This document shows, one piece after another, positions 14,167 to 59,741 of a stretch of DNA of 64,000 nucleotides. A model generated the notes under the pieces. The model made no database searches. It was not told the origin of the DNA and was given only the letters and a program-made list of their open reading frames with translations. Made by a program: the position numbers and the translations under genes. The stretch comes from Gekko japonicus (Eukaryota). Numbering within the stretch: the stretch's first letter is position 1; each line of letters opens with the position of its first letter. The stretch covers positions 1 through 64,000 of the forward strand of contig NW_015159767.1 of the NCBI RefSeq assembly GCF_001447785.1. The letters run 5' to 3'.

Positions 14167-14209
14167 ACCTCTGAGGATGCCATTCACAGCTACTGGCGAA
14201 ACGTCAGGT
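14167..14209 (+). ncRNA. Minimal type I hammerhead ribozyme motif (mirror copy)
   Basis: ACCT-CTGAGGA-T-GCCA(loop)TGGC-GAAA-CGTC-AGGT. Confidence 0.62.
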
Positions 14210-17365: not shown

Positions 17366-17453
17366 CTTTATCTGTCTTCCCCGGAAGAGAGACTCATCTA
17401 GCGCTAAGGACGTCCGCACTGACTCCTTGTCCGAAAACTCAATGTAAGCAAAC
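17366..17453 (-). CDS. PABPN1: PABPN1 exon 5 (RRM, RNP1)
   Basis: 88 bp, AG/GT bounded. [29 protein letters not shown]. Confidence 0.96.
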
Positions 17454-19158: not shown

Positions 19159-19265
19159 CCTTTGGGGTGACCAGTGTACTTGTCACAGAGGATGGTCACG
19201 CGATTGACAGAGCCGCAACCGTGGAAGTGGGCTTCCAGCTCTTCCGCCGTTGCTCCGTAATCCAC
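19159..19265 (-). CDS. PABPN1: PABPN1 exon 4 (RRM)
   Basis: 107 bp, AG/GT bounded. [36 protein letters not shown]. Confidence 0.96.
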
Positions 19266-19350
19266 CTAGAACAATAGGAAGATGAGGTGCGAAAAGAGAA
19301 AAGACTAGCCTCTTTTGCTGTCCCAAATGCAGGGGGGGGGGGGGACTTAC

Positions 19351-19425
19351 CTTGCCTACGTATACGGACCTGGCATCTGGTTCCTGCTTCCATCTTTTCT
19401 TCTATAGACATTATGACTGGGCCAG
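19351..19425 (-). CDS. PABPN1: PABPN1 exon 3 (apparent 7-nt insertion/frameshift as assembled)
   Basis: AG/GT bounded, 75 bp. AGPVIMSIEEKMEA, then an extra GAACCAG, then DARSVYVGK in a shifted frame. Confidence 0.9.
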
Positions 19426-20382
19426 CTGCGGAGGAAAGCAAAAGCATCAGCTGCGATTAATAAACCCAAGGAAAGAATCCTTCCTGATGTCCAGGAAGAA
19501 GCATTCATCTGAGAATCCCACCCAGAAGAGATCAGTGAGGATTTTTCTGCTTCGTTACGACTCCTTCCATGTTTCAAGACTGGGTCACACTTCCAACCAC
19601 CCCCAACAGCATCCTAGCCCAATGTACCATTCCATGCCCATGTCTTCTCTCCAAGGAAAGTAGCCATGTTTCTCTGCACATACCCTCCCCACTGACTGTG
19701 AACTTAGGCAGATCATGAGAAGGATGGCAGGAGGGGTTGCATTGGTGCTTAGTTCTCGTGGCCCTTTCTTACACGGCCAGGGAAATGCTAACTGCCACTC
19801 TAGTGTCAGAAAACAATTTTTCTCCAGGCCAGTTTGGCTGGAGATCCTGGAGGTTTTTTTGTCATCTTCTGGGTGTGGAACAGGGGTCACTGGGGGTGTG
19901 GGGTGGAAGTATTTGTGAATTTCCTGCATGGTGCAAGGGCTTGGACTAGATGACCCAGGAGGTCCCTTCCAACTCTATGATTCTATGACTTTGTGCGTGC
20001 TTATCAACTAATGTGAACTCCAGCCTTCAAGGGCAGTATTTCAAAGTTGTTTTAAAAGGTTGCATCACTTCAGAGAAAAACTACAAACACCCTACAGCTC
20101 AGATAACTCAAGAGCTGTCAAACATTCGGTGTAAAGGCCAGCTTGTATATTTCCTTCCTACCTTCTCAAACCCTCACCTACAATGACCCCTCCTTAAGCA
20201 CACTTTTTTTAAAAAGGGCAAAAGGATGTCCCAGTAGGGTTCAAAGGCCAGAAACCTCAACATGCTGAAAGACACACACCCCCATTAAACAGAACTGCAG
20301 CTTGCACTAAGGGTCTTGCCACTTACACAAGTGTGAAAATACTGATCTAGAAGAGAGGTTAAAAAAATAAAAGGATGCTCAC

Positions 20383-20497
20383 CATTGCCTGGGGGAGGGC
20401 TCATGTTCATTTGCTTCTCAACTTCATTCTGCAATTCTTTCAGCTTCTCCGCTTCCTCCTCCATCTCTCGCACACGGGCTTTAATGGCTTCCAGCTC
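20383..20497 (-). CDS. PABPN1: PABPN1 exon 2 (coiled coil)
   Basis: 115 bp, AG/GT bounded. [38 protein letters not shown]. Confidence 0.97.
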
Positions 20498-22203
20498 CTG
20501 GGGTGGGGGAAGAAGAGCGTAGATTAGAAAAACACGTTGTTGTTTCTAAGGTGCTTTCAATTCCATTCTGTTCATTCTCACCATAACTCAGTTCCCAGAC
20601 AATGTCTGCTTTTCTACATACAAAGTGCTACAAGTTTTATCTACCTCCACATTCATTTATACACCCCTTTACTCAATTATTATTATTAATTAAATTGGAT
20701 TTCTTAATCACCTAATCCCCGTAGAATAACAAAGCTCTAGGCAATGCACATCATTTTAAAAACAATTAGAAAGTTTTTAAAAACAATTAAAAAATCAAAA
20801 CATATAATAATTTATAGACCCTTTACTCAAGAGTTACAATCACCACTACCAGATAATTGCCTGCCGATCACTTCTGGCCTACTTTCAGCCACAACTCCTG
20901 ACCGCACTCAAGTCTTACTACAGGGTCCCTTAGATGCTCACCTGGCTGGCTCCCTCCAGGCATCCCACCGCCCGCCATTTCTCTTTGCACCTCTTAAGCC
21001 TCTCCCAAAATGATACTGTTACCACCCATTGTTCCCTCTAAGCTGAGTGAGTGTGAGCTAGTTCACAGTTTTTTAGCCTCTGGCTCACGCATTTTTGTCT
21101 TAGCTTGGGAGGGAGGGCTCCAGAGCAAGCTAATGTATGCACCAGCCAAACAGCTTGGAGGGAGCGTAGGTTATCCCCTTGAGTGGGCTCAGCCCACAAG
21201 AGCGCCTGTGCTTCCTATGCGGTCCAGATCTAACCTCCCTGCCCTGGAGATTTAAGACTGGACGGGGGGGGGGGGAGGCACCAGGGCCCGGACAGGNNNN
21301 NNNNNNNNNNNNNNNNNNNNNNNNNNNNNNNNNNNNNNNNNNNNNNNNNNNNNNNNNNNNNNNNNNNNNNNNNNNNNNNNNNNNNNNNNNNNNNNNNNNN
21401 NNNNNNNNNNNNNNNNNNNNNNNNNNNNNNNNNNNNNNNNNNNNNNNNNNNNNNNNNNNNNNNNNNNNNNNNNNNNNNNNNNNNNNNNNNNNNNNNNNNN
21501 NNNNNNNNNNNNNNNNNNNNNNNNNNNNNNNNNNNNNNNNNNNNNNNNNNNNNNNNNNNNNNNNNNNNNNNNNNNNNNNNNNNNNNNNNNNNNNNNNNNN
21601 NNNNNNNNNNNNNNNNNNNNNNNNNNNNNNNNNNNNNNNNNNNNNNNNNNNNNNNNNNNNNNNNNNNNNNNNNNNNNNNNNNNNNNNNNNNNNNNNNNNN
21701 NNNNNNNNNNNNNNNNNNNNNNNNNNNNNNNNNNNNNNNNNNNNNNNNNNNNNNNNNNNNNNNNNNNNNNNNNNNNNNNNNNNNNNNNNNNNNNNNNNNN
21801 NNNNNNNNNNNNNNNNNNNNNNNNNNNNNNNNNNNNNNNNNNNNNNNNNNNNNNNNNNNNNNNNNNNNNNNNNNNNNNNNNNNNNNNNNNNNNNNNNNNN
21901 NNNNNNNNNNNNNNNNNNNNNNNNNNNNNNNNNNNNNNNNNNNNNNNNNNNNNNNNNNNNNNNNNNNNNNNNNNNNNNNNNNNNNNNNNNNNNNNNNNNN
22001 NNNNNNNNNNNNNNNNNNNNNNNNNNNNNNNNNNNNNNNNNNNNNNNNNNNNNNNNNNNNNNNNNNNNNNNNNNNNNNNNNNNNNNNNNNNNNNNNNNNN
22101 NNNNNNNNNNNNNNNNNNNNNNNNNNNNNNNNNNNNNNNNNNNNNNNNNNNNNNNNNNNNNNNNNNNNNNNNNNNNNNNNNNNNNNNNNNNNNNNNNNNN
22201 NNN

Positions 22204-22288
22204 CGCCGCCGCCGCCCAGCTCCCCGTCGCCCCCCAAGGCCACGATCGCCCCTCGCCCGCCGCTGCTCGTGCCCCGCAGAGACGCCAT
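22204..22288 (-). CDS. PABPN1: PABPN1 exon 1, 5' part (remainder in N gap 21297-22203)
   Basis: ATG at 22288 in a CpG island reads MASLRGTSSGGRGAIVALGGDGELGGGG into the gap. It lies directly upstream of unambiguous PABPN1 exon 2. Confidence 0.7.
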
Positions 22289-22900
22289 CGACCCGGCCGC
22301 CGCCGCCTGCCGCACTAGCCGCCCGCTCCCGCGCTCCGACTGGCTACCTCGGGGCTCGCGCTCCCATTGGCTCCCTCGGCGCTCCGCGGCTCCTCCGGCG
22401 CAGGGCATTGGCTGGCCCGCTCCCTCGCGCCCGCCCCGCTCGAGCCACTGGCGGAGCCGGCCCGTCGCTCACGGGGACGGGGGACGACGGTTGGCTGAAC
22501 GAGGCCCAGCTTCACCATGGCGGAGGGGAGCGTCACGGGCTAGGCGGGAGGTCCGGTCTGATTGGGCGGCTCGGAGGGTTGACGGCCGCCCCCGTCCCCC
22601 CGCGCGGAGCTAAATAGGCCGTCTGTAATTCAATCACTTGTGTCCTGGGAGGGGATTGGCCGCCGGGATGAAAGGCCTGAAGGGAAGGTTGCCATTGGGT
22701 AGCCTGATTTTTTTTCCCTTTCCTCCCCCCCCAACCGTCAGTCAATCAGCGCGCGGGAGATGATTGGCTGGAAACTGAGTTTTTTTCAAATGTGGCCAGC
22801 CAGGGGCGTTTATTGGACAAAGTAGGGTCAGGGCGTGATGTTCCGCAGGGAAGTGCCAATCATATAGAGATCTGCCATTTTATTGGCTGTCCTAATTAAT
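22289..22900 (-). promoter_or_regulatory. PABPN1 CpG-island promoter/5'UTR
   Basis: High GC and CpG content, multiple CCAAT (attgg) boxes, and a YY1-like GCCATTTT near 22875, immediately upstream of the ATG. Confidence 0.7.
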
Positions 22901-27010: not shown

Positions 27011-28141
27011 ATTAGAGGCATTGTGTGCTTGCTTGCACACTATGTAAAGATTCCCACATAACATTCTGCTCCCCATAACTGGCTAATGTGTCTCTTTTCC
27101 AAGATAGCTCCAACTGTGGAAGCGCGAAGAGGTTCCCCCTATGCTGAGCGTAATCCCTCCCAATAGGTCACGGTTCAGGATGAGTGTCCTGAACCCAAGT
27201 TAGAGAGTCCACACGTGCTAAGGATACAGGTGGGGGAAAAGCACATGTGTTAACACAACCCAGAAATCAACAGGAATTTCCAAATCTGGAAACTGGTAGG
27301 CAGAGCTGTTGAGTTTAAAAATAAATGAGGAGTTAGAACCCACCCTGTTGATAGGTTAAGAAGGGTAACTGTTGGTCTGCAGCAAAAGAGCCAGATTTAA
27401 GCCCAGTAGCAACTTTTTGTTGTTGACCAACAAGATTTGGGGGGGGGGGGTATGAGCTTTTGATGAAGGGACAAAGAAAACTCTGACTCTGGAAAACTTC
27501 ATACCCTGGAAATCTCATTGGTCTCTAAATTGCTACTGGACTTGAATCTAGCCAGTTTGGTGAGCCGGTTTGGTGTCTTGGTTAAGTGCGCGGGCTCTAA
27601 TCTGGGAGAACCGGGTTTGATTTCCCCCACTCCTCCACTTGCACCTGGCTGGATGATCTTGGGCAAGCCGTAGTTCTGATAAGAGCTGTTCTTGAAAAAG
27701 AGCCGTTTCTGTCAGAGTTCTCTCACCCCCAGCGACCTCACAGGGTGCCTGTTGTGGGGAGAGGAAGGGAAAGGAGTTTGTAAGCCTCTCTGAGACACCT
27801 TTGGGTAGTGAAGGGAGGGTTATAAATCCAATCTCTTCTTCTTCTTCTAGCTTATCTAACCCATCCTATTGTAACCCCTCAAGCAGCCCTGGGTCAGGAG
27901 GAGCCATGCTTTTGTGCCACCCCCTGACTCAGCCTCACCATTGTCCAGGCCATTGTTAGCAGGCATTAATCAGGCCAGCCGCTCAGGTAATTCAATCATC
28001 CCACCTCCCCTCTGCCTCATGTACCTGCTGTCAAATTGGATCTGATTTATGGCAAAAAAAAAAACCCCACNNNNNNNNNNNNNNNNNNNNNNNNNNNNNN
28101 NNNNNNNNNNNNNNNNNNNNNNNNNNNNNNNNNNNNNNNNN

Positions 28142-36100: not shown

Positions 36101-36451
36101 GAAAGGCCTCCGGGGTCGCCATCAGTGTTCCCTCTAAGCTGAGTTAGTGTGAGCTAGCTCGCAGTTTTTTAGCCTCCAGCTCACAGATTTGTGTCTTGGC
36201 TCAGGAAGAATGCCTCCAGAGCAAACTAATTGATGCAGTAGCCAAATCGCTCGCTCACAACTTTAATGCCAGTAGCTCACAAAGTAGATTTTTGCTCACA
36301 AGACTCCACAGCTTAGAGGGAACATTGGTCGCCATATGTCAGCTGTGACTTGAGGGCAGGCTTTCCACCACCACAACTAGTTCTTCAACTATCCTCCACG
36401 GGTTTCTTTTTTCCCCCTAATCCTCCGTTCCTTCTTTCTTTGCCTCCCCAG

Positions 36452-36931
36452 GATACTCTGAATCTATGGTGCCCGCTGGAACCCACTTTCCCAGACCCGC
36501 TCTCGATGCCCGATTTCTTGCCACGCCTCTTGGCACAGTGCATCCTGCTGGAGGGCGCCCGGGCCGAGGGCTCGTGCATCTCCGGAACCATTCGGGTGCT
36601 CAACTTGGCCTACGAGAAGCGGGTCTCTGTGCGGTACACCTGGGACTCCTGGGCCACTCAGCGTGAAGCTCGGGCTTCCTACGCCGCCCCTGCAGGGCGG
36701 GACCGGGACCACGCCGACCGCTTTGCCTTCCGCCTGCCACTGCCAGTCCCGTTGCCCCCGGGGGTCAGCCTAGAGTTTGCTCTCTGCTACCTTGTGGGCG
36801 GGAAGGAATTTTGGGACAACAACCAAGGCCGCAACTATTGCCTGAGACCCCCGCCCTCCGTGGAAGAGGAAGATGAGCCCCCCAGCCCCACTCGCGATTG
36901 CTGCGAGACAGGATGGATACATTTCATATAG
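36452..36931 (+). CDS. PPP1R3E: PPP1R3E coding exon 2 (CBM21 domain)
   Basis: Polypyrimidine tract and cag acceptor. VLNLAYEKRVSVRY...FWDNNQGRNY...GWIHFI*; the GWIHFI end is typical of PPP1R3E. Spliced total 310 aa. Confidence 0.94.
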   Translation, partial: DTLNLWCPLEPTFPDPLSMPDFLPRLLAQCILLEGARAEGSCISGTIRVLNLAYEKRVSVRYTWDSWATQREARASYAAPAGRDRDHADRFAFRLPLPVPLPPGVSLEFALCYLVGGKEFWDNNQGRNYCLRPPPSVEEEDEPPSPTRDCCETGWIHFI

Positions 36932-40999: not shown

Positions 41000-41345
41000 A
41001 TCCGGGTTCCTCTCTTTCCAAGCCCGGGCTGCCTGCTCTGCCTCCCCCCCCCCCCCCCCCGCCTCTTCCTCCTCCTCCTCCTCCCCATCCCTCTCCCCTT
41101 TCTCCCTCTCCAGAAATCCGCTTTCTCCTCCTCCCTCCGTTCAGATCCCTCCTTCTTTTCCTACCAGGCACCGAGAGGGGGGCCGGCGGCGGTGCTCCGG
41201 GGCCCCCCCCCCCTTCCNNNNNNNNNNNNNNNNNNNNNNNNNNNNNNNNNNNNNNNNNNNNNNNNNNNNNNNNNNNNNNNNNNNNNNNNNTGGTCCCCCT
41301 TCTGTTTCTAAGTCCCAGCCAGGACCTTCTGCGCGGGGGGGGGGG
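41000..41345 (+). promoter_or_regulatory. Possible GC-rich promoter / non-coding first exon of the TWSG-like gene
   Basis: GC-rich, G/C-run region with a small gap about 3 kb upstream of coding exon 1. That exon begins with a splice acceptor, so an upstream exon is needed. Confidence 0.3.
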
Positions 41346-44472: not shown

Positions 44473-44589
44473 ATGCCTCGCGGACTGGCCTTGTTCTTGG
44501 TGGCGGCAGCGACGTGGGCCGTGGCCTCCCCTGCTGACGGATGCAACAAGGCTCTCTGTGCCAGTGACGTCAGTAAGTGCCTGTTGCAG
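44473..44589 (+). CDS. Twisted gastrulation-family gene, coding exon 1 (signal peptide and start of N-terminal Cys-rich domain)
   Basis: MPRGLALFLVAAATWAVASPADG-CNKALCASDVSKCLLQ. Acceptor at 44443 upstream of the ATG, donor gtgaga, phase 0. Confidence 0.92.
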
Positions 44590-46248
44590 GTGAGATCTTA
44601 GGGAGGATGTGCCCTTCGGGGCTTAGACCTTCAAACCAGGATGACGTTGCCCCTTCTTGTGGCTGCCCGGAGCTCTCTTCTGTTCTGAGTTCAAATGGGA
44701 GGCCCGCCTCACTAACTGGTACCCCAAAGGACTGGTTTTTAGAGCCCGGGATATTTTTTTGGGTCCCCTCTCCAGGGTGGCTTCCACACGGGGACAGGCT
44801 TGTGTGGGTTCCCTGTTGCTGCTGCAAGTGTCGATACAGTGCATTGTCAATGGGCTCTGCAGTTCCCTGTCCCAGTCCTCCAGCAGCCGCCATCTCTTGT
44901 TCTCTGGGCTGCCAGGGTTTCTTTCAGTTATTTTTCTAAATTATCAACTGAGTATTGTTATATCAACATAATGTTATGACAATCTGTGTATCAGATTCAC
45001 CAGATCCCCAGGTTACGTTTTTAACAATATAAGTCTCTAGCCCCTTTTGTTGCAGATGTATGCCTTTCCCTTTATATCTCCTCAAAGAAAGGGGCTGGAC
45101 CAGAGGTATCAGACTTCTTTGTTACGAGGGCCAGATCTGACATAAAAGCTATTTTGTTGGGAAGGGCCATGTCCAGTGTTCCCTCTAAGCTGAGTTAGTG
45201 TGAGCTAGCTCACAATTTTTTAGCCTCCAGCTCACACATTTTTGTTTTTGCTCAGGAAGGATGGCTCCAGAGCCAACTGATAGCTCGCTCACAACTTTAA
45301 TGCCAGTCGCTCACAAAGTAAAATTTTTGCTCACAAGACTCCACAGCTTAGAGAGAACATTGTCCACCATAAAATGTAACACCAGGTACTGGAGATATAA
45401 AGTTTATAAATGACACGGGCAAACCCAGTTAATGATAATATTTTATCGTTATCGAAATAGAAACGGAAGCAATTGATTCCTAGGAGTGAAAGCAATTGAT
45501 TTAGTGGGGAATCCACAAAAGCCCCAGTAAATGTATTTTATATGCAAGACTAGGTTTCCCTCCCAAGGGATACCATACCTGCCCCCTAGCCATTTCCTTT
45601 CATTTCTTGACAGATTCGACCACACAGACCTCACCATGTGTGCCCACGTGCCCACTCCCCTCCCCCCACCGAGCAGCCTCCTGACTTTCCTCTCTCACAC
45701 CAGTTGCTCGCAGGCCAGATAAAAGCTCTGGACGAGCCAGTTCCGGCCCCTGGGCCGCATGTTTTACACCCATGGGCTAGACTTACTTAAAAAAAAGAAA
45801 AGAAAACTAGGAGTTCAGAAAATCTGTTGCACACGTTCTTATAACATGATATGACTATAATGATATTCAGTTGCCACTTTTTAGGAAAAGTCTCCTGGTC
45901 TCCCTAGGGGAAGGAAGTGGCTGCTATGGGGCTGGGGAAATCCCAGCTTTCCCACCCCCCACTGCAGTCCTCTAGGCTTTGCTGCAATCTTTCCCAAAAC
46001 ATCAACGCAAAGCAGGTTTGAGAAACGTTGGAGAAAAGCGGTGGAAACCCGGAGAGGTGTATGAATGCACCACAGGGGTAGCGTGGGGGGTGGGTGTCCG
46101 CTTCCCAACAGGATTAAACAAAGGGCTAACAGCCCATGTGGAAATGGCCCATGTATCTCTGTGAGCCATTACTCTGGGCATGCAACCTGACTGCGCGCAT
46201 AGATATGCCCGTAGCAGTAACTCAAGAAAAAAATGCATGTGCCCAAAT

Positions 46249-46570
46249 TAGGGTTGCCAAGTCGATCTTCGCTGGGAGTGGGGGGCTCCCGGTTGGTGTC
46301 TGGTGCGCGCGCGCTGCATGCACATCACCTGAAAGTGACCTGACGACGCCAGCCACGCTGGGGCGGGGCCACGGCCATACAAGGGAAAACCATAGAGTTT
46401 TCCCTCGGATGGCCGTGGCCCCTCCCCCAGCGTTCCCGGCGTGGTTGCGTCACTTCCAGGTGACGCGCACGTCAGGGAGGAGTCCCCCCCGGGGCCCGAT
46501 CCAGCGCCGCCGGGGAATGGGCCTCTGGGGCGGGGTTTTCCCCGCCCCCCGGGGGAACTTGGGAAGCCTA
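46249..46570. mobile_element. hAT-type MITE (tagggttgcca TIR family)
   Basis: 8-bp TSD gcccaaat. Related copy at 24262-24609; elements with similar ends near 9905-10118 and 41839-42147. Confidence 0.75.
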
Positions 46571-46571
46571 G

Positions 46572-47213
46572 CCCAAATTCAACCACCAAAAAATCAATGA
46601 CTTATAGATTTTATAGCTATAACATATACATTGCTCAGAACAAATTTTCCTATGACACAATTAAATAGACAGGTAGAAATTCACAGGGAAAGTTTTCCCC
46701 CCATAAACATCTTTGTAATAATCAAATTCAAAAAAGTCCTTGAACTGTAGGATGTGATTGTGTCTCTGCCATTCATGAAAATGGTACAGTGGAGACATGC
46801 TTCAGACTTTTGAAGGGAGGTTCCAAGAAATGATTGATTTTCCATTGGGAATCACTGAGGATTGCTGTAACGGAATATACTCTGTGGATGTTTACACGGA
46901 TCTATAAAATGTTGCATCCAGCATGATTCTTGAAAAAGTTATTGAAACGGATTTATAACCGGGGGTCCGTCAAGTCGGCTGGCAGAGACACGATCACATC
47001 CTACAGTTCAAGGACTTTTTTTGAATGTAATTATTACAAAGATGTTTATGGAAAAAAACTTTACCTGTGAATTTCTGTCTATTTAATTGTGTCATAGGAA
47101 AACTTGTTCTGAGTAATGTGTATGTTATAGCCGCCCTGAGCCCTTTGTGGGGAGGGTGGGGTATAAATTTAATAATAAATAAATCATTGGGGTTTGGGTG
47201 GTTGAATTTGGGG
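46572..47213. repeat. Long inverted repeat (foldback) in TWSG-like intron 1
   Basis: 46616-46771 is the reverse complement of 46980-47131, and 46572-46605 matches about 47178-47213. Confidence 0.75.
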
Positions 47214-48657
47214 ACGTGCATTTCCCCCCTTGTTTACACATATTGCTGTGCCGCTGCTTTTTCTCTTGTAGCAGTGACTCATGCAGGGATGCACGGGGCA
47301 GGCTCCTTTGAAGGATAATCCCAATTGCCTCTCTGTGCTGAGAGCAACTGAATGATCCCATCACACCCCAGGCAGAATGAACTATCCCCCAGGGGAGCCT
47401 AAGTGAGAGGAGGTTCAGAGGGTGGCCATGTTGGTTTTTAGTAGAACTGTTCGATTTGAGTCCATTCGCACCTTAAGAGACCAGCAAGAGTTTCAGGGTG
47501 GAAGCGTTCAGGAATCAAAGCTTCCTTGGTCAGACAGAAAGGGAAGTCTAAAGAAGGGAACGTTGACTCTCAGAAGCTTACACCCCAAAACGCTTGTCGG
47601 GTCTCAAAGGTGCTCCTGGACTCAGATCTAAAAGTGAGAGCAGTGACACATGCCCAGAAACCGGCTGGCATCTGCACCTGGTGAAGTGGTCACTTTGGGC
47701 CCACCAGAGTATTTGATTATTTAGTGAACGCAGGGCTTTTTTTTAATAGAAAAAGCCCAGCAGGAACTCATTAGCATAATAGGCCACACCTAACATCAGA
47801 AACTCATTAGCATGTTAGGCCACACCCCTGCTTCTTCTGCCTGCTTAGTACACGGAAACCAAGCCTCAAAATGAGGGGAAAGGGGACTGCATGCGGCAAA
47901 CGTTCCACAGCTAAACGGGACCCCAAGCTCAGTCCTTTCTCAAATCAGAGGTCTCCGTCAGCCACTGTTGAGAAGCAAGGCATTGCAGTGACCAGTTAGT
48001 GGGGAAGCACAGCAGAGTCATCTAGTGGCAGAATTCGGAAATGCAAGAGAAGCTCAAATACTGCAACAGCAGGGCTTTTGGCGAGGGAGGGGAGGGACAG
48101 GCTCGGAAGCCAGCCGGAACTCCGTTCCTGTGTGTTCCTGCCTAAAAATAGCCCTGAGTGAACGTATTTTTCTCTGCGCACTCCCCTGAAACACAGTATT
48201 GAAATAGGTGGGCCAGATCAGCCCCCCTTTCAGAAGGCAGGAACCAGGACTTGCAAACTGAAGAGCCTACAGATTTAGCAAGGTTCCCCTTGAGACTCAA
48301 GATGCAGATGGTAGAAGCCAGAGGAGGGTTTGTTTCTTTGGGACAACCTGGGACCTTTTCCAAGGTGAAAACCCCGGCAGGTATAGCTGCTCTAAAGGGA
48401 GAACCAGTGAAACGCAGTGGTATGAGTGTTGCTCTTGGACCTAGCAGGATCCGGGTTTAAACCCAGCCCCCCTACTATCAAGCATGCTGGGTGACCCTGG
48501 GCCACTCATGGTGTCTCAGCCTGGCGAACCTCACCGGGTTGTTTCTGAGACTTAAAACCACATTTGGTGCCCTGTGCTCCTTGGGGAAAGGGTGGGATTA
48601 AAACACACTCGATAAAGAGTTAAAAGTTGTGACATCCCGCTTGGCATCTCTTGGCAG

Positions 48658-48757
48658 GAAGTGTGCCAGTGCGAGGCGAACCACGCTGGCTGCCCGTGCT
48701 GTCAGGAGTGTGCCTTTTGCCTGGGGAACTTGTGGGAATCCTGCTGCGAATGTGTGG
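48658..48757 (+). CDS. Twisted gastrulation-family gene, coding exon 2
   Basis: 100-bp AG/GT exon not in the ORF track: [33 protein letters not shown](G). Cys spacing is identical to TWSG1. Confidence 0.92.
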
Positions 48758-51700
48758 GTGAGTGAACTCTGCAGCGGGGGGGGGGATCAGAAGCCCAGTC
48801 ATTCATCACTAGAATGCTATGATTTATGGGGGCGGCAGGGGGGGGGAGAGCATGTCTTTTTCTCCTATATTATTTGATGATCGAAATGGGTTATGGACTT
48901 CCAAACGACGAAGGTGGCTGAAATATTTTGCCTGTCCTCGCAGAACACTAGCCAATCGGTCCTGAGCCCCTTTCTGAGGAGAAGCCTCATCTAGTCGCCG
49001 GAGCAGTGGCCACCTTCCTGTTACAGCAGACACAGAAGTGTCTGGTAGCACCTTAAGAGACAAACAGATTTTGTGTGGCAGGAACTTTTATGAACCAGAG
49101 ATCTGCACTTCATATGATGCATGAAGTGTATCCTTGTATCACAAACAGGGGTCATTTAGTAGAAAAAGAGGTGCAGGAGCTCATTAGCATAACTTATTTG
49201 CATATGCCACACCCCCTGACATAACCGGAAGTGTGTCAGAAGGCAACACTCACCACTCAGGCTCCACTGGACTGTTTTGGATTGCTAGCTACTGGGGGGG
49301 GGGACGTGCAGATCTGTCCTCGCAGAGGAGGGAGAGCTTGTACCTGAATAAAACTTGGTCTTAAAGGTGCCACTGGACTGTTTTGGCTAGCTATGGGGAG
49401 GGGGAATGCACAGATCTGCCTTCACAGAGGAGGGAGAGCTTGTACCTGAAGGCGGGATGGGGGGGGCCTCTGCAACTTACCTGGCTGCTTCTTGCTCCTT
49501 GTGGCCCGACTGAGGGCTGCTGAGAGCAGGGGCGGGGCTTGTTGCATGTGCCCGCCCCCTGGGCTCCTTACTGCCGGAGCTCTGCTCCTGTGTGCTCCCG
49601 CAGGAACTGACCCCTGATCACAAATATGTATATACACACACAAGAAGGAATATATATAGGTATATTCACACACACAAGAAGGAACCTGTGAGATTCTCGG
49701 GTTGGGGGGATTTGGCTCATTCCCCCTTCCCCTCCTGGCCTCTGTGCCTGCCTGGCTGTCCCCCCCCCAGGAAGGCTCCGGCTGCACATCTGCCTGCCCC
49801 CCACCACTCTTTTTCTCCACTCAGCTGTTTGGCTCACATTGTGGTGAGGGCGGCAGCTACTGTGGCAGTGGCTCAGTGGCAGAGGGGGAATGTTGCGGTC
49901 TGCAGCGAAGGCTCCCTTCTCCTTGCCCATCTCCTTGAGGTGAAGGGAGGTGGTTTGGTGGTAGGCGGAGGATGAGAGGCTGCAGCCGTCTGCCTCCGGC
50001 ACCTCTGCCTCACGTGGAGGCAGTTTGGCGGCAGGTGGGGAGACTGGCAGTGGAGGCGCCTACATAAGAACAGAAGAGGAGCCAATGTTGGATCAGGCCA
50101 ATGGCCCATCCAGGCCGACATTCTGTGTCACTCAGTGGCCAAAAATACCAGGGGCCATCAGGAGGTCCAGCAGTGGGGCCCAGGACACTAGAAGCCCTCC
50201 CCCTGTTGCCCCCCCAAGCACCAAGAATACAGTGCATCCCTTGCCCCAGACCGAGAGTTCCTATCTATACCTTGTGGCTAATAGCCCCTGATGGACCTCT
50301 GGCCTCTGTGCCTGGCTGTTCTGTCCCTCCCCTGGTTCTCTTCCTCGCCCACCTATGGTGTCGGTTCAGAGGCAGTTGTCGGCACACTGAGTTGTAATTC
50401 TTTTGGGGTGGGGGGTGTCTTTTCAAGGCTTGGGGTTGTTCTGCAAACCTGGGCATCCCCCCCAACTTTGGAGGAAAATCTCCCTTCTCTCACTGTGGCC
50501 CCAATCTGTAGATTTAAGTATCCACAGATAGGGCCGTGTTGACTATTAGATATCACGCTGGTATAAATACGCATTGAGGGGGGGGAATGGCTCTCAAAGC
50601 TATGAAGTGAAAGAGTTTGTGACCTTTCCGTGCAAGAGCACAGTGTCTGTTCAGAGGAGCAGAGACAGATGCGGAGCAGCACACAATCCTCCCAGGAATG
50701 CTTCACCGGCACCAAACCTGTGGCGTGGATCTACCGTCTTTATGGTGGCCCGATATGTCCATTCAGCTACAGTCTCCCCTTGAAAGTACTTTCGCTATAG
50801 AATGACGACTTTCCGTGCCTGCTGCTGACCTGAAAGCCACCATTCTACACAGAAAAGAAAGAAAAAAGGCACAGAGGGAAACTCCGGCACGAACGTGGTG
50901 GCTGTAACCCATCAGCGAGCTGGATGGTATTCCACTGGTGGTGGCGGAAAGTCCAGTCAAGTTGCAGCCGACTTATGACGACCCCATCAGGTTTTCGAGG
51001 CAAGAGGCAAAGAGAGGTGGGTTTGCCACTGCCTGCCTCGGCGTAGCAATCCTGGACTTCCTCACCGGTCTCCAAGTACTAATCTGGGCTGACCTTGCTT
51101 AGCTTTTGAGTTCTTCTATCTCAAGTTTTTTGTTAGTTGGTGGGAGATAGGAATTGATAATCAAAAGACTGCCCCCAGTCCAAGTCATAATGACAGCCAT
51201 TGCTCACTGATCCAAGGGGAGATAAGAATGCCCGGGGGCCCTTTTAGTCTTCCTGGGCCCCAACCTGGGATGGCCTTACCCGCATATGAATAGTAGCCAT
51301 CTAATTCAAGAGGAGCTGCAGACCAAGTTTCCTGGAGTATAAAACCTCATGGTTTTGCCGGAAAAAAGGCGTATCTGAGGGCAAAGCAAAGCATCTAATC
51401 CAGCCTGCTACGTTCCAAGCTAAGATGTTCATCGCTTTGGGTGTATCTCACGTCTTTAATTGTCAGTCTTCCATCATAATTGTTTCTAAGTCACCCATTG
51501 GGTCCCGGATTATACATCCATTTTTAAGTGTATGAGCAGGAACAGATTGCTCACTCCTGGGGGAACGTTGGTGCTTAATGTTCCTTTGTACAATTATTAA
51601 CCGTTGGGTCCTCTTCCCTCTTGTTGCTCATTGAAGTTGTTATCAGTACCTGGTGAGGGATTGTCCGAGCTTTACAGATCATTTGCTCATTCCTTCCTGG

Positions 51701-51950
51701 AAGGTCAGCTGTTATTTGACATTGGTCCCCCTTCTCTATGCTTGATGTATTAGATTGCAGATGATCCAGGTTCAGGGCAATTTCCATCTGGCCCTCTGGG
51801 CGGGGGCTCATAGGGGAGTGGTTTAAGGGGACATAGTGGATCATTCCGGGCAGATTTCTCTTCCTCTGTTTTTTTCTTTTTTTAACTATTTGTATTTGTA
51901 GGGCAGATTTCTCTTCCTCTTTTTTCTTTTTTTAACTATTTGTATTTGTA

Positions 51951-52170
51951 TCTAGCAGTTCGAAAGCAAGAAATTGCAAGTAGATAAATAGGTACCACTT
52001 CGGTGGGAAGGTAAAAGCGTTCCGTGCGCCTTGGTGGTTAGTCATGCCGGCCACATGACCACGGAAACGTCTTCGGACAGCGCTGGCTCTTCGGCTTGGA
52101 AACGGAGATGAGCACCGCAACCCTAGAGTCGGACTCGACTGGCTTTCGAGCAAGGGAACCTTTACCTTTA
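51951..52170 (-). mobile_element. Sauria SINE (3'-truncated)
   Basis: Reverse complement of the same family, with an aaaggtaaagg head. Confidence 0.82.
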
Positions 52171-53242
52171 TTAAAGTTTTCAAATGTTTTACAGAGCAAT
52201 ACAAACATTGTCAACTTGGCGTGCTACATGAAGAATAGCATTCTAAAAAAACCCCCAGTTTAATAATACATTTTAACGTGCCCTTATACTATTGAGTAGT
52301 GCTAAATACATAGATTTTTTTTTTCGGGAGGCAATTTAAAGAAAAGGACTGAGCTGACTAAGTACTGATCTTTGACTATGAAAGGAATGGTCACTGCTTT
52401 TTAACTTTATATCAACAGGTCTTTTCTCTCTAAAAAAAAAAGTGACAATTTTCCCAATGGAGTCGCAATGTTCCCTCTAAGCTGCGGAACCTTGTGAGCA
52501 AAAATTCCACTTTGTGAGCTCCTGGCATTAAAGCTGTGAGTGAGCAGTTTGGCGACTGCATGAACTAGCTTGCTCAGGAGCCCTCCTTCCCGAGCTAAGG
52601 CAAAAACCTGTGAGCCAGAGGCTAAAGAACTGTGAGCTAGCTCACACTAACTCAGCTTAGAGGGAACCAGGGGTCGTTTCGTAGAAAAAGAGCTAGGGGA
52701 ACTCATTAGCATAACTCGTTAGCATAAGCCACACACCCTGACATCACCGGAAGTGTGTCGTAAGGCCACACACCCTGACATCACCGGAAGTGTGTCATAA
52801 GGCCACACACCCCGCCCCCAACGGTCCAGGCCGGCGGGAGTCGATCCCCTGCGATCCCCCCCGAAATAACCTCTGGAGGGAACACTGATTGGAGTGTACA
52901 GTTCCCATACATTTCTCTAGTAAGAAGTAATCCCAGACTGTGGCATACCAAGAGGCGGTTGTGGGTGGTTTTTAGTATCTCTGTTTTCCCTTTCCAGGGG
53001 TGCATCCGATTTCTCATGACTTTTGAGATCTGATGAGATCGGGCTCGCCGGGCCTATCAAAGTCAGGGCAGAGGGTGGTGGAACCTGCCATTAAGCCGCA
53101 GACAACTTACGGCGACCCCATTGGGTTTTCAAGGCAAGAGATGAACAGAGGTGGTCTGCCATTGCCTGCTACTGTGTGGCGACCCTGGACTTCCTCGGTG
53201 GTCTCCCCTCCAAGTACTGACCAGGGCTGACCCTGCTTACCT

Positions 53243-53617
53243 TGTGAGAAGAGCAGGCTGCTGGAGAAGACTCTTGAGAGTCCCCCGGACTGCAAGAAGA
53301 GCAAATCAGTCAATCCTAAAGGAAATCCACCCTGACTGTTCCCTGGAAGGCCAGATAATGAAACTGAAGCTCAAATACTTTGGCCACCCAATGAGAAGGG
53401 AGCACTCCCTGGAGAAGACGACCCTGATGCCGGGGAAGATTGAAGGTCAAAGAAGACGGGGACGGCAAAGGATGAGATGGTTGGACAGTGTCATCGATGC
53501 AACGAACGTGAAGTTGAGCAAACTTCAGAGGACGGCGGAAGACTGGAAGGCCTGGCGGGAGCTGGTCCATGGGGTCTCAAAGAGTCGGACTCGATTGTGC
53601 GACTGAACAAAAAAAAA
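53243..53617 (+). mobile_element. BovB LINE 3' fragment
   Basis: WRRLLRVPRTARRANQSILKEI...LKYFGH...GKIEGQRRRGRQRMRWLD...HGVSKSRTRL, then an A-rich tail. Confidence 0.88.
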
Positions 53618-54545
53618 GCCTTGGATATCCAGATTAGGGGAGTATTTCATTAGGCCTCTCAATACAGATGATGGGCTTCTAATGTCCTGGCCCCACTGGT
53701 GGACCTCCTGATGGCACTGGTATTTCTGGCCACTGTGAGACACAGAGTGTTGGACTGGATGGGCCTTTGGCCTGATCCAACATTGGTGTCTCTTATGTTC
53801 TTATGACTCTCCGCGTACCACAGGGACTCTATTAGCAAAGCCTATCTAGGAAGAATGGGTTATCATCGATCTATTTGCACTCTTGGAAATGGGCACTGGG
53901 CTCATCTGGCAGAGAAAGGTCAGAGACTGGACCCCTCGCATTCCGTCGCGCTTCGATTCCACTTGTCACCGTTTCCTCTCTTTCCGCCAAGATATGTTTC
54001 TGTGTCAGCTGAGGACGCGCTTCAGGCATCTGATGAAGTGGGCGACAGTCCAGTCTCTCTCCGCCCCACAGTCGGCATGAGATGCCTACGCGCTGGCTTT
54101 GCAAAGTGGGAAGGCAGCTGTGAACTGAGTCCAGGCACGCCAAAGGCATAAATCTCTCCACTCGGAACAGCAGCCGCCCACGACTGGCAATGAGTTAATG
54201 ATGTTCTGACGTTAAGTTATGAAACCTTTAAAAACAATTATAAGGCCGATGGTGAAAGCGGCTGTCAAGTTCTGAGTTATGGTGACCCCCAGGCTAGCCC
54301 GGTCTCCTCAGATCTCGAAAGCTAAGTGGGGTCAGCCCGGGTTAGTATTCGGATGGGAGACCAGTGTTCCCTCTAAGCTGAGTTAGTGTGAGCTAGCGCA
54401 CCGTTTTTTTAGCCTCCAGCTCACACATTTTAGTCTTAGCCCAGGAAGAAGGGATCCGGAGCAAATTAATTTAGGCAGGAGCCAAATCACTGGCTCACAA
54501 CTTTAGTGCCAGGAGCTCACAAAGTAGAATCTTTGCTCACAGGAC

Positions 54546-55127
54546 TGCGTAGCAACCCCGGACTTCCTTGGTGGTCTCCCAGCCAAGGACTAACCAGGGC
54601 CAACACAGCTTAGCTTCTGAGATCTGATGGGATAGGGCTAGCCTGGGCCATCCAGGTCAAGGCAAGAGATGAACAGAGGTGGTTGGCCGTTGCCTGCCTC
54701 TGCGTAGCAACCCCGGACTTCCTTGGTGGTCTCCCGTCCAAGGACCAACCAGGGCCAACCCTGCTGAGCTTCTGAGATTTGATGGGATCGGGCTAGCCTC
54801 AGCCATCCAGGTCAAGGCAAGAGATGAACAGAGGTGGTTGGCCATTGCCTGCCTCTGCGTAGCAACCTTGGACTTCCTTGGTGGTCTCCTGTCCAAGGAC
54901 CAACCAGGGCCAGCCCTGCTGAGCTTCTGAGATCTGATGAGATCAGGCTAGCCTGGGCCATCCAGGTCAAGGCAAGAGAAGAACAGAGGTGGTTGGACAT
55001 TGCCTGCCTCTGCATAGCAACCCTGGACTTCCTTGGTGGTCTCCCGTCCAAGGACCAACCAGGGCCAGCCCTGCTGAGCTTCTGAGATCTGATGGGATCG
55101 GGCTAGCCTGGGCCATTCAGGTCAGGA
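54546..55127 (-). repeat. Tandem array (about 3.7 x 155 bp) of 5S rRNA-derived SINE units
   Basis: Period 155. The minus-strand unit aligns to 5S rRNA (gcccgatc..gatctc.gaagct.agcaggg...tgga.gggagacc). Dispersed copies near 15430, 16990, 35980, 38535, 50960 and 53010. Confidence 0.8.
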
Positions 55128-55316
55128 CAGCAATCACAATAGGTATTCATAAAATAATTTTGTACAGAGAATCCCTCGTTCCACCCAAAATCTGACATGT
55201 TGCCCGTGGCTGGGGTGGAGTGAACCTTGGCCCTATCCGCTCTCATCCAACAAGAGTAACCTGGTCCATGGCTGAAGCTTCAGGAAGGCCTTTTTCTCTC
55301 TTTTCCCCCCACCCAG

Positions 55317-55532
55317 GGCTCTGTGACGAACGCCCGGCGTCAGCCCCTCGCTCGGCCCAGAGAAGCTCCATGCACAACCTGGTGTCCCCCGTCCCCTCCC
55401 TCTTTCGGGCCCTCATGGCGATCTCTGACAACGACCCCCCTGTGGGCTGGAGCATCCTGACCCTGCCGGTGGAAGAGGAACTGCGGCAGAACCACGCAGA
55501 CACAAGCCACCTATTGCTAGGGCCACACACAG
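55317..55532 (+). CDS. Twisted gastrulation-family gene, coding exon 3
   Basis: cccag acceptor and gtgagc donor. LCDERP...PVPSLFRAL...WSILTLPVEEEL resembles TWSG1 PIPSLFRAL...WNIVSFPVAEEL. Confidence 0.9.
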
Positions 55533-57612
55533 GTGAGCTGCGGGAGAGAATCCTGGGGGATTCGGAAAGTGCTCAATGCACAGGGGGTGGGGGGACCTGG
55601 GCGCACAGGAGAAATTGACATGTGGAATCCAACTCAGAAAGTGTTTGATGTGCATGATGTAGGGTGAACCTGGTGCACAGGAGAAATTAACATGTGGAAT
55701 CCAACTCACAGAGGTAGGGTGAGCTGGGTGAGCAGATGTGAAAATAGCACATGGAAATAAATTCAGAAAACCCTCGATGCACATAATACCCCGGGAACTA
55801 AATGTGCATGAGAAATTAACATGTGCAAATCAAGAGTGTGCATGACATACGTTTCTTCAGCCGTCAGGAAGACCATTCTCTTCCCAACATGAGCCAGTTC
55901 TGCCTCAGCTAAATGTGGGCAGGAGACTTCCTCAAACAGATATATTAGCAGTCAGGGGTCGTTTCATAGAAAAAGAGGTGCAGGAGCTCATTAGCATAAC
56001 TTATTTGCATATGCCACACCCCCTGGCATCACCGGAAATGTGTCAGAAGGCTCCACTGGACTGTTTTGGATTGCTAGCTATTGGGGGGGTGGACATGCAG
56101 ATCTGTCCTCGCAGAGGAGGGAGAGCTTGTACCCAGGGCCAGCCCACTCACTAGGCGAACTAAGCGTTTGCCTAGGACGGGCCGGCCCTTAGGGGCGCCA
56201 AACTGCACCTGCAACTCCCCACCATGTCTGAGAGTGAGCAAGAGCCAGTCTGGGGGAAGGAAGGGGACATGGGTGACAGGTCGGGGTGCTCTGGTCAGCC
56301 ATGGCCTGCCTTTCCGTTTCGGGTCCTCCCTGCCGGTGTTCCGGGAGGGAGGGAGGGAAGGCGGCGTTGGCCCTGCGTCCCAGTCCCACCCCAGTCCCGC
56401 CGGGATTGGTGTCTCCCCCCACCGCCTCTTATTCCCTGGTCGCCGACATGGAGCTGCCTCCGTGAGCCGCCGCCGCCAGTCGGTCCTCCTCTCACAGAGG
56501 GCGTCGCGGACTGCGCTGGCCTCGCCTCTCCCTTGCCGCACCATTGCTAGACGGCCACTCCAAGCAAAAACAGATAGAGAAATCTCTGACCTTCCCCACC
56601 TCAGTGCCCTGCTGCACTTTGACTTCAGCTGCCTGCCTGGCGTGGCTCCAGCCTGTCCCCCTCCCTGCTTGCAGCCCTCTGCGGCTGTGGGGCTTCTCGC
56701 GCCTCTTCCTCCTCTCCCCAAGAAGCCTTTTCAACCGGCTGGAAGGTGTCTGCCGCTTTCCTTTCACTGCGCACTCCCTCCCCCCCCCCCATGCCCCTGC
56801 CGCCCTGGGGCGGAATGCGGTGACAGGGNNNNNNNNNNNNNNNNNNNNNNNNNNNNNNNNNNNNNNNNNNNNNNNNNNNNNNNNNNNNNNNNNNNNNNNN
56901 NNNNNNNNNNNNNNNNNNNNNNNNNNNNNNNNNNNNNNNNNNNNNNNNNNNNNNNNNNNNNNNNNNNNNNNNNNNNNNNNNNNNNNNNNNNNNNNNNNNN
57001 NNNNNNNNNNNNNNNNNNNNNNNNNNNNNNNNNNNNNNNNNNNNNNNNNNNNNNNNNNNNNNNNNNNNNNNNNNNNNNNNNNNNNNNNNNNNNNNNNNNN
57101 NNNNNNNNNNNNNNNNNNNNNNNNNNNNNNNNNNNNNNNNNNNNNNNNNNNNNNNNNNNNNNNNNNNNNNNNNNNNNNNNNNNNNNNNNNNNNNNNNNNN
57201 NNNNNNNNNNNNNNNNNNNNNNNNNNNNNNNNNNNNNNNNNNNNNNNNNNNNNNNNNNNNNNNNNNNNNNNNNNNNNNNNNNNNNNNNNNNNNNNNNNNN
57301 NNNNNNNNNNNNNNNNNNNNNNNNNNNNNNNNNNNNNNNNNNNNNNNNNNNNNNNNNNNNNNNNNNNNNNNNNNNNNNNNNNNNNNNNNNNNNNNNNNNN
57401 NNNNNNNNNNNNNNNNNNNNNNNNNNNNNNNNNNNNNNNNNNNNNNNNNNNNNNNNNNNNNNNNNNNNNNNNNNNNNNNNNNNNNNNNNNNNNNNNNNNN
57501 NNNNNNNNNNNNNNNNNNNNNNNNNNNNNNNNNNNNNNNNNNNNNNNNNNNNNNNNNNNNNNNNNNNNNNNNNNNAGCCCCCCCCCCCCCCCGGTCCTGA
57601 TTTCTTTTGCAG

Positions 57613-57833
57613 GCCTGGCCTCCCCGGATACCGAGGGCCTCAATGCGACGGCACCCCCCTGCCAGGCGATCTTCTTCAACGAGTGCCTCTCCATGAGCCG
57701 ATGTCGCGCGGCCTGCCAGTCGGTCGGGGCCTGGCGCTACCGCTGGTTCCACAACGCCTGCTGCCAGTGCTTGGGACCCGACTGCCGGGGCTACGGGGGA
57801 GCGCAAGCACAGTGCTCCAACTGCCGGGAATGA
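57613..57833 (+). CDS. Twisted gastrulation-family gene, last coding exon (C-terminal Cys-rich domain)
   Basis: ttgcag acceptor. CQAIFFNECLSMSRCRAACQSVGAWRYRWFHNACCQCLGPDCRGYG...CSNCRE* contains the YRWFHNACC Tsg signature. Confidence 0.93.
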
Positions 57834-57962
57834 GCTCTGGATCCCTCTCCCCACCACGCGCCCCCTGCCCGTGCGCACCGTTTCCCATTTGTCTCTTCTC
57901 TCTGTGCTCCCTTCCTTTTAAACTGAAATGGCCTTCGTTGATCCCTTTGGTCCCAGATCACA

Positions 57963-58178
57963 GATCCAGAGGAGTGAGCTGTGTTAGTCTGTTGCTGCAA
58001 AATAGTAAAAAGCCCAGTAGCACCTTTAAGACTAACAAACTTTATTGTAGCGTAAGCTTTTGAGAAACACAGCTGTCTTCGTCAGATGCATGCATCTGAC
58101 GAAGAGAGCTGTGTTTCTCAAAAGCTTACGCTACAATAAAATTTGCTAATCTTAAAAGTGCTACTGGACTTTTTACTA
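57963..58178. mobile_element. Palindromic Penelope-like remnant in the TWSG-like 3' region
   Basis: 88-bp arms 58003-58090 and 58091-58178 centred on gatgca|tgcatc, with a CTGACGA...(G>A)AAAGCTTA decayed hammerhead. Confidence 0.65.
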
Positions 58179-59741
58179 GTTCCAAAGGCATCCCATCATC
58201 TCTTTTCCCTGCACCGATCTAGAAGGGTCCTCACAAGCTCTTTGTGTGGCTACCCTTCCATCAACAGCGCCGCCTCTTGCAAAGAGTTGTCCTTTTGCAG
58301 CCACCTGTAGCTAACTGGCCAACATTCCCTCCGCTTCTCTTATCTCCCCAGATCCATTGTTTGGGACCCGCATACAACCTTTGTAGTGATTGGGGTTTTT
58401 ACCCCTGTAGTAATAATATGAATAAAATCTTTTTACTTATTTGGGGAAAGGAGTTTTGGACTGGGGTAGAAGAAAATGACTGTTGTATACCAAGCCTTCC
58501 TGAAGTACTACAGACGTGTATTGGGGAAGATAAGGATGCTTTAGAATAACTTTGAATCTTGTGACTCATTATAGACGTGGCTTATTAAAGACAGACACAT
58601 TTGCCTTCTAGCATAAGCTTGTCCTGGACCACTTGGTCAGATGTGCTAGATAGTAGCACCTTAGATAACAACAAGGTTCCAGGGTATGAGCTTTCAAAAG
58701 TCAAAGCTCTGGATTCAAATCTAGCTGTCCAACTGCAGACTGACATGGCTATTCCCTTGAAACTGTCTTCTTGGTCAAACGCACTGTTAGCAGTCAGACC
58801 CCTGCTCCCCCAGGAGCAGTTTAGCGCATGTAGAGAAAGAAGTAAACCCCCTTCATACAGATATCACCTCAAAAATCACAATTATGAAACACTGTCTGGC
58901 CCAGAGTGATACACAAAATCTCTGCCAGAGAAAAGCTAGAAGCCAAGCCTGGGAAAAATTTTGAAGGTAAAGAAGAGATTGGATTCATACCCTGCCCTTC
59001 CCTCGGAGTCTCAGAGCGGCTTACAATCTCCTCCCCACAACAGATGTCCTGTGAGGTTGGTGGGGCTGAGAACAGCTCTGAGAGAACTGTGACTGACCCA
59101 AGGTCACCCAGCTGGCTGCATGTGGAGGAGTGGGGAATCAAACCCGGCTCTCCAGATTAGAGTTCGCTGCTCTTAATCACTGCACCAAACTGAAGCCAAA
59201 GGTGGCCACCCTATGGAGATGCACCACTAAGGACAATAGGTTTCCCCTGACCAATCCTGTCAACACCAGCCCCACTTCCCCCTGACCTATGTACCCCAGT
59301 TTAGCAATTCTTTACTCTTAAAACCAGTAATCACGGGGACATCAAGAGACATTTACACCTTTGGTACACCTCAGGAAGTCCCATCAAACTTCTCCCACCT
59401 CACTGTTTACTCTCCTGAAAGCCCATCAAGGCATTGTTTTGGAGGCACGCGCACACACACACACACACGTGAGCCCTTAGTAGAATAAATACCTGTTCAT
59501 GTGTCCCGGGATTTTTATTTGTGGCCACAACAGATTTATCTGAAATTGGGATCACTTGTGACCGACCCACAAGAGGTGCTCTGGGCCCAGCAGGTTAGTA
59601 TCTGCAGCTCTGAAGGGGGGGGCAGCTAGTTCATCAAGCCCCCCAAATGAGCTCACAGCCATATCTCAGGAAGGGCCCTGTTCATATGAACACATGACGC
59701 TGCCTTCTGCTGAATCAGACCCTCGGGCTACCAAAGTCGGT

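Follow-up and report, generated by a model that had tools for sequence, protein, structure and literature searches.

A second twisted-gastrulation paralogue beside PPP1R3E in Gekko japonicus, and its relatives across jawed vertebrates

Tsg, the twisted-gastrulation protein, is a key regulator of the gradients formed by bone morphogenetic proteins (BMPs) and, to our knowledge, is usually regarded as single-copy in vertebrates, recent fish and frog duplicates aside. The neighbourhood of its gene, TWSG1, is that of ANKRD12 and RALBP1. In a stretch of 64,000 nucleotides from Gekko japonicus (assembly GCF_001447785.1, contig NW_015159767.1, positions 1 to 64,000; termed here "the window"), a Tsg gene is found on the plus strand at positions 44473 to 57833, beside PPP1R3E. 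The locus raises the question of what this gene is: TWSG1 itself in a new place, a recent or decaying copy of it, or a different gene. It is a member of the Tsg family and not the TWSG1 orthologue. It is, with high probability, a functional and expressed gene for a secreted protein, which belongs to a second paralogue group (the "clade B", informally "TWSG2") older than the split between sharks and bony vertebrates.

Gene model, transcripts and constraint

The coding sequence is divided into four exons, with GT donors at exons 1 to 3, AG acceptors at exons 2 to 4, and phases 0, 1 and 1. The coding part of exon 1 (44473..44589, GT donor at 44590) carries the start codon, a signal-peptide-like region, cysteines 1 to 3, and the BMP-contact helix CNKALCASDVSKCLLQ; the motif CNKALCASDVSKC is also encoded in this exon. 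Exon 2 (48658..48757, flanked by AG and GT) supplies the remainder of the N-terminal cysteine-rich domain, with 10 cysteines, and ends in phase 1. Exon 3 (55317..55532) provides the final N-domain cysteine, the linker, and helix alpha4 of the C-domain with its Chordin-patch residues (VPSLFRAL), before another phase-1 end. The coding part of exon 4 (57613..57833) comprises the C-terminal 10-cysteine domain with the motif YRWFHNACC, the N155-A-T sequon, and a TGA stop codon at 57831-57833. Both split codons (48757|55317-18 and 55532|57613-14) read GGC, and the 654 spliced nucleotides yield, in frame, 217 codons plus the stop. Searched separately, each exon translation exceeds the Pfam gathering score of 25, exons 1 and 2 with Tsg_N (27.1 and 36.5 bits) and exons 3 and 4 with Tsg (27.5 and 93.2 bits), a result well past anything expected by chance. 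The protein contains 24 cysteines, 14 N-terminal and 10 C-terminal, each aligned to a TWSG1 cysteine. Hydrophobic residues 5-18 (LALFLVAAATWAVA) precede the first cysteine (residue 24) and resemble a signal peptide, as judged by eye. The initial annotation had described a four-exon, in-frame gene for a 217-residue Tsg protein, and its coordinates are exact, with the splice sites, the 14 and 10 cysteines, and both motifs all present.

The spliced product is identical over all 217 residues to the Gekko japonicus RefSeq protein XP_015261836.1, "twisted gastrulation protein homolog 1-B-like", and the gene model is therefore not new; this identical entry (P0248) was the query for whole-protein searches. 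Although the model already exists in RefSeq and UniProt, its orthology group, age, retention pattern, and probable function appear to be undescribed. A literature search, with subscription journals outside its coverage, turned up no publication about a second Tsg paralogue in vertebrates or about its loss in mammals; its matches were the Drosophila tsg2 allele, Shrew, and Twsg1-LacZ mice.

Transcript evidence comes from runs placed on positions 54800-58800, namely the contig sets X1, X2, and X9, which stem from different studies, and the raw RNA-seq run X20, all bearing the same organism label. The junction between exons 3 and 4, listed as a joint 55529 -> 57610 ("GT..AG, cut +3", equal to 55532|57613), is carried by one X2 contig (depth 178), by one 792-nucleotide X9 contig with 214 letters on its shorter side, and by three X20 reads with three distinct starts. 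These transcripts skip 55533-57612 as a single GT..AG intron, and depth is zero over 56274-57479. An assembly gap (56829..57575, 747 N) lies wholly within this third intron and ends 37 nucleotides ahead of the exon-4 acceptor; since the transcripts join 55532 directly to 57613, the gap conceals no coding exon in them. On the other side of exon 3, where RNA depth is also seen, the same X2 and X9 contigs end loosely ahead of 55316, with 181 or more letters left over, the final 30 of which equal the end of exon 2; this confirms the exon 2-3 junction as well. Apart from repeats, the introns within the placed region are void of transcript depth, and these empty introns, together with the spliced contigs, fit an RNA origin of the contig sets. 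The exon 1-2 junction is taken from the RefSeq identity and from gap-free colinearity with orthologues, no read among the runs spanning it. The gene is thus transcribed and, at the two junctions seen, correctly spliced. A retrocopy is rejected, as the gene has three GT-AG introns, two of which are confirmed by the spliced transcripts.

The gene also bears the mark of constraint. Compared with the assembly, the runs show seven coding differences in exons 3 and 4, six of them synonymous third-position transitions. The only non-synonymous one, E152K, falls in the variable linker, and Heteronotia likewise has K there. The ratio of non-synonymous to synonymous variants per site (pN/pS) is ~0.05, for 106 synonymous and 329 non-synonymous sites, and the probability of at most one non-synonymous change among seven is 0.001, or 0.008 when transitions only are counted. 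A silent locus evolving with a dN/dS near 1, which the initial annotation had named as an outcome that would undo its proposal, is not what these data describe. Over longer distances, each of the 24 cysteines is conserved in 24 or more of 25 clade-B proteins, and TWSG1 proteins have them in 22 of 22 cases. In the Heteronotia binoei model (P0153), a Gly occupies residue 179, the position of an otherwise conserved cysteine (TWSG1 Cys185); the cause could be an error in sequencing or in the model, or a true loss of one disulfide.

Several features of the transcript data concern the assembly or the untranslated parts of the mRNA. The assembly has A at 55519, where every covering run has G (synonymous, Leu140), and some transcripts have one C more at the beginning of the 3' untranslated region (UTR), behind 57834 and directly following the stop codon; both differences are either assembly errors or differences between individuals. 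The 3' UTR extends over 57834..58440, its end being approximate, with an AATAAA at 58421-58426. RNA contigs reach 58371 (X9) and 58439 (X2), and the raw-read depth drops after ~58420. Coverage dips over 58016-58160, where X1 and X2 contigs depart from the reference at 58039/58046 into unrelated letters, and returns at ~58158; owing to this dip and to the loose ends at 58016-58149, continuity of the 3' UTR is not fully shown. The dip could be due to a polymorphic indel, a local misassembly, or an alternative 3' end. Two intronic stretches, 54800-55070 and 55870-56140, reach contig depths of thousands to tens of thousands in all runs. Mismatches are many there, and a joint given as "goes back 81" (56133 -> 56053) falls within one such stretch. 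Both resemble copies of an interspersed repeat that is abundant and transcribed, and not part of the Tsg mRNA.

Position among vertebrate Tsg proteins

A first tree (IQ-TREE, LG+C20) was built from 59 proteins and rooted with Tsg from amphioxus, a hemichordate, an echinoderm, a mollusc, an annelid, and a cnidarian. The gecko protein is found in clade B (support 100/99), together with seven other squamates, Latimeria, Protopterus, two salamanders, twelve anurans, Cetorhinus, and Acipenser. The TWSG1 clade (89/90) comprises shark, ray-finned fishes, frogs, squamates, a turtle, birds, and a whale. For a second tree of 66 rows, the longest branches were dropped and same-species pairs were added (Scyliorhinus, Rhineura, Pogona, Eublepharis, Mixophyes, Rhinoderma); support is 100/99 for clade B and 96/98 for TWSG1. 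The gecko protein lies outside the TWSG1 clade in both trees. An approximately unbiased (AU) test rejects the union of squamate clade B and squamate TWSG1 into one clade (log-likelihood difference 54, p 5.8e-6). Scyliorhinus possesses both genes (P0355 and P0007) on different chromosomes, its clade-B protein being basal in clade B and its TWSG1 falling within TWSG1. As both clades include shark and bony vertebrates, and in view of the AU rejection, the duplication predates the split between cartilaginous and bony vertebrates.

The true TWSG1 of Gekko japonicus is present as well, documented by RefSeq proteins (XP_015262087/6), on a scaffold of 2.06 Mb; the clade-B gene is on a scaffold of 403 kb. 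This second RefSeq locus (P0181/P0267) lies inside the TWSG1 clade and its product is 85% identical to whale TWSG1. The clade-B protein is 42% identical to gecko TWSG1, compared with 51-52% to shark and coelacanth clade B. Between gecko and shark, identity amounts to 51% in clade B versus 73% in TWSG1, meaning that clade B evolves faster. TWSG1 and clade B are likewise on different contigs in Rhineura, Pogona, Podarcis, Zootoca, Lacerta, Ahaetulla, Eublepharis, Scyliorhinus, Mixophyes, and Rhinoderma.

Sequence searches give a similar picture. The gecko protein differs from that of Gekko kuhli by 3 residues and from the Heteronotia model by 13 (94% identity, gap-free). With exon 4 as the query, phmmer against 1.8 billion cluster representatives finds three near relatives at 78-85% identity, after which identity falls to ~50%. 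In a word-indexed search with one of these three, a python protein, squamate proteins are 64-76% identical; coelacanth, newt, axolotl, basking shark, many anurans, and sterlet follow at 47-53%, and the true TWSG1 of reptiles, birds, and mammals reach only 41-45%. A clade-B profile scores 282-366 bits on clade B, 269 on lamprey, and at most 264 on TWSG1.

Cluster listings document clade B in the gecko genera Gekko, Heteronotia, Paroedura, Eublepharis, and Sphaerodactylus, in further lizards (skinks, a cordylid, lacertids, an amphisbaenian, anguimorphs, and iguanians), in snakes (pythons, boas, colubrids, elapids, and vipers), and, beyond squamates, in three sharks, paddlefish, newts, and many neobatrachian frogs. 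The profile search of predicted proteomes returned no member from mammals, birds, turtles, crocodilians, bichir, or teleosts. The initial annotation had proposed a retained paralogue that is an extra in lizards; the old, separate paralogue stands, and the restriction to lizards does not, as the gene is found in all major squamate lineages, amphibians, lungfish, coelacanth, sharks, and sturgeon or paddlefish. In the snake Erythrolamprus reginae there are two clade-B entries (P0365 and P0368), on contigs of 545 kb and 153 Mb, a pair that could reflect a haplotig or a recent duplicate.

Database names conceal this orthology. Clade-B proteins are variously called "TWSG1-like", "1-A-like", "1-B-like", "TWSG1" (Anolis carolinensis, in both UniProt and NCBI), "Twisted gastrulation homolog 2" (X. 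tropicalis, in UniProt), and "Homez isoform X2" (the 229-residue proteins of Bufo gargarizans and Eleutherodactylus coqui, named by NCBI), and the names should be unified. Duplicates of the teleost twsg1a/twsg1b and Xenopus TWSG1-a/-b type resemble the present case as duplicated Tsg genes in non-mammalian vertebrates, but derive from later duplications and lie inside the TWSG1 clade, so that the RefSeq labels "1-A-like" and "1-B-like" are misleading for clade B.

These data also decide between the other readings of the locus. That a single TWSG1 orthologue was translocated beside PPP1R3E might be suggested by the name of the Anolis protein, but it is refuted by the separate TWSG1 locus on another scaffold of the same gecko, and its probability is close to nil; the proviso of the initial annotation, that this might be the only TWSG gene in the genome, falls with it. 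Equally negligible is a recent, fast-evolving TWSG1 duplicate confined to squamates. The long squamate stem branch (0.98 changes per column) and the RefSeq names "TWSG1-like" and "1-B-like" would suit it, yet the gecko protein, with 42% against 51-52% identity, groups with shark, coelacanth, and amphibian clade B in two samplings, and the AU test excludes its union with squamate TWSG1. Nesting in squamate TWSG1, the further outcome that would have told against a retained paralogue, is thus replaced by a separate, gnathostome-wide clade. A transcribed pseudogene, or a gene prediction bridging the gap, would accord with a divergence greater than that of TWSG1, with the 747 N in intron 3, and with the modest number of raw reads. 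It is nevertheless very improbable: the reading frame is intact, orthologue models of ~215-218 residues exist in gecko, skink, lacertid, amphisbaenian, anguimorph, iguanian, and snake lineages, the 24 cysteines are conserved, variants are six to one synonymous, and transcripts splice at the predicted sites across the gap.

The origin of the duplication is less firmly placed. The human 14q11 block (PPP1R3E, HOMEZ, SALL2, NFATC4) and chromosome 18 (SALL3, NFATC1, BCL2) belong to one four-fold paralogy group, which further comprises VAPA/RAB31 at 18p11 versus VAPB/RAB22A at 20q13, its blocks being 14q11, 16q, 18, and 20q. Clade B and TWSG1 most likely arose in the early vertebrate whole-genome duplications. 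An ancient paralogue produced instead by a small-scale event (segmental or single-gene) in the stem gnathostome or vertebrate, which would not be an ohnologue, is unlikely, though far from negligible: the trees date the split only to before the shark/bony-vertebrate divergence, with the cyclostomes unplaced, but TWSG1 and clade B are on different chromosomes in every species checked and the four-fold paralogy of the two human regions also speaks against it.

Against an old, functional second paralogue with the distribution described here, several points have to be set. The branches leading to clade B are long, and those inside it drew a warning from the tree program. Lamprey and hagfish Tsg take no settled place in the trees, so that the duplication cannot be assigned to a particular round of whole-genome duplication. 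The absences are drawn from protein databases and not from genome searches. Matches to PPP1R3E were found in turtles, alligator, tuatara, and mammals and none in birds; bird assemblies may lack the entire block, or birds may have lost it, and this weakens the claim that the Tsg paralogue is absent in birds. Synteny across species is indirect, being derived from matching contig sizes and an annotation name. The sets X1, X2, and X9 were assigned as RNA by a tool's guess only, raw reads across the exon 3-4 junction number just three, and the function proposed below is one read from residue conservation.

Protein features and proposed function

As a whole, the gecko protein is matched by two crystal chains of human TWSG1, 8bwa and 8bwl (E 2.8e-55). 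An AlphaFold2 model built on a 57-sequence alignment has a predicted local distance difference test (pLDDT) score of 76.7, with low confidence in loop 46-52 of the N-domain and in linker 139-145. Foldseek with this model returns 8bwa, 8bwi, and 8bwl, all TWSG1, as the only significant PDB matches (E 3.5e-18). The 14 N-terminal cysteines align one-to-one with TWSG1 Cys26-Cys77 (PF23782, Tsg_N), and the 10 C-terminal ones with Cys167-Cys221 (PF04668, Tsg). Like TWSG1 (8BWA, 8BWI, 8BWL), the protein has a two-domain layout with 14+10 cysteines, a near-identical BMP-contact helix, and a retained Chordin patch. Unlike TWSG1, it is encoded next to PPP1R3E and not ANKRD12/RALBP1, and it has a Leu finger, a Val in place of Met188, a single sequon, and a three-residue insertion.

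The N-terminal domain of TWSG1 binds the type-I-receptor site of BMPs via helix alpha1 (Malinauskas et al. 2024, PMC11167000). In the human protein, Ile40 is the key finger, and contacts are made by Lys28, Ala32, Ser33, Asp34, Val35, and Glu42 (PMC11167000). The equivalents of K28, A32, S33, D34, V35, and E42 are identical in the gecko protein, and I40 is replaced by Leu38; a Leu occupies the finger position in 25 of 25 clade-B and 5 of 22 TWSG1 proteins. The patch that contacts Chordin vWC domains consists of Ile100, Leu103, Leu107, Leu114, Trp116, Phe172, Met176, and Met188 (bioRxiv 10.1101/2024.07.08.602551). Four of these positions are identical in the gecko (L103, L107, W116, F172) and four are conservatively changed (I100V, L114V, M176L, M188V), the Val at the Met188 position being shared by 20 of 25 clade-B proteins. 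A three-residue insertion, with the motif SDNDPP, follows helix alpha4. The TWSG1 sequons N52, N81, and N147 are absent, with G, P, and G at the aligned columns. The sole sequon of the gecko protein, N155-A-T, is invariant in an 11-sequence clade-B alignment and could be the positional counterpart of N147, the alignment of the linker being uncertain.

Given this conservation of contact and patch residues, the gecko protein is expected to bind both BMPs and Chordin-family proteins. Its N-terminal three-helix, seven-disulfide domain would insert the Leu38 finger into the type-I-receptor pocket of BMP/GDF dimers, as in TWSG1. The C-terminal five-disulfide domain would engage vWC domains of Chordin-family proteins through the hydrophobic patch, and the protein may in this way tune the formation and turnover of BMP-Chordin complexes. 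The Leu finger, the Val at Met188, the SDNDPP insertion, and the sequon changes could alter potency or specificity; faster evolution and the loss of three N-glycosylation sites suggest that ligand preference or potency probably differs from that of TWSG1. A broader reading, put forward tentatively, is that clade B is a second extracellular BMP/Chordin modulator that has diverged in function, its ligand preference or its dependence on glycans being altered, and that was present in the gnathostome ancestor, was lost at least three times independently (in mammals, in the line of turtles, crocodilians, and birds, and in neopterygian fishes), and still acts beside TWSG1 in squamates and amphibians.

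Two Xenopus proteins, "Twisted gastrulation homolog 2" of X. tropicalis (P0167) and LOC446926 of X. laevis, are placed in clade B by both trees. Their identity to the gecko protein is ~48-50%, and they differ from it by short C-terminal extensions. The literature search found no functional paper on either. Drosophila offers a parallel in which Tsg paralogues, Crossveinless (Cv/Tsg2) and Shrew, split BMP-modulating roles by stage or tissue (PMC13186252). These insect duplications are independent, and Shrew, unlike the gecko protein with its two domains, is devoid of the N-terminal one that binds BMPs.

An old, conserved, and expressed second Tsg lineage that is common outside mammals, Xenopus (the main vertebrate Tsg model) included, bears on the interpretation of knock-down phenotypes. 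Should clade B act as proposed, loss-of-function work on Xenopus Tsg, with its debate on pro-BMP versus anti-BMP roles, would have had an unrecognised paralogue in the background. The group also offers a natural variant (Leu finger, no N52 or N81 glycans) for structure-function studies, and would add a clear example of a developmental signalling modulator that was lost repeatedly. The value of the locus is moderate, the gene model being known and the function being inferred from conservation.

Neighbouring genes

PPP1R3E lies 7.5 kb upstream of the Tsg gene, both on the plus strand. Its main coding open reading frame (ORF; 36350..36931), which serves as synteny anchor and is not part of the Tsg gene, matches Pfam CBM_21 with 94 bits and is 83-88% identical to squamate PPP1R3E, which confirms the upstream neighbour named in the initial annotation. 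Clade B and PPP1R3E are on contigs of equal size in Liasis, Anolis, Thamnophis, Candoia, and Rhineura, and also on a 1.03-Mb Varanus scaffold. HOMEZ is not found within 6 kb downstream of the Tsg gene, nor elsewhere inside the window. The label "Homez isoform X2" in toads and Eleutherodactylus is most simply explained by a clade-B gene directly beside HOMEZ on the same strand. Of the proposed order PPP1R3E-Tsg-HOMEZ, the first adjacency is thus observed, and the second is compatible with these names, HOMEZ itself being outside the window.

Further upstream, exons of PABPN1 are found on the minus strand (13541-20485), and the segment 19158-19265 matches Pfam RRM_1. The exons show what we take to be PABPN1 motifs: IKARV at 20471, VTILCDK at 19179, FAYIEF/SLFRGR at 17375-17452, a further one at 15273, and the C-terminal WYSPY at 13541. 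The order PABPN1 (minus), PPP1R3E (plus), Tsg (plus) mirrors human 14q11.2, with one extra gene. BCL2L2 was not found by motif searches or by Pfam scans of ten minus-strand ORFs at 22-33 kb; it may lie in small exons or N gaps. The window contains six assembly gaps, five of them (3902-3962, 14301-14661, 21297-22203, 28071-28141, and 41218-41290) in addition to that in intron 3 of the Tsg gene (56829-57575). Long ORFs on both strands at 21179-22408 are read-through of the N stretch at 21297-22203.

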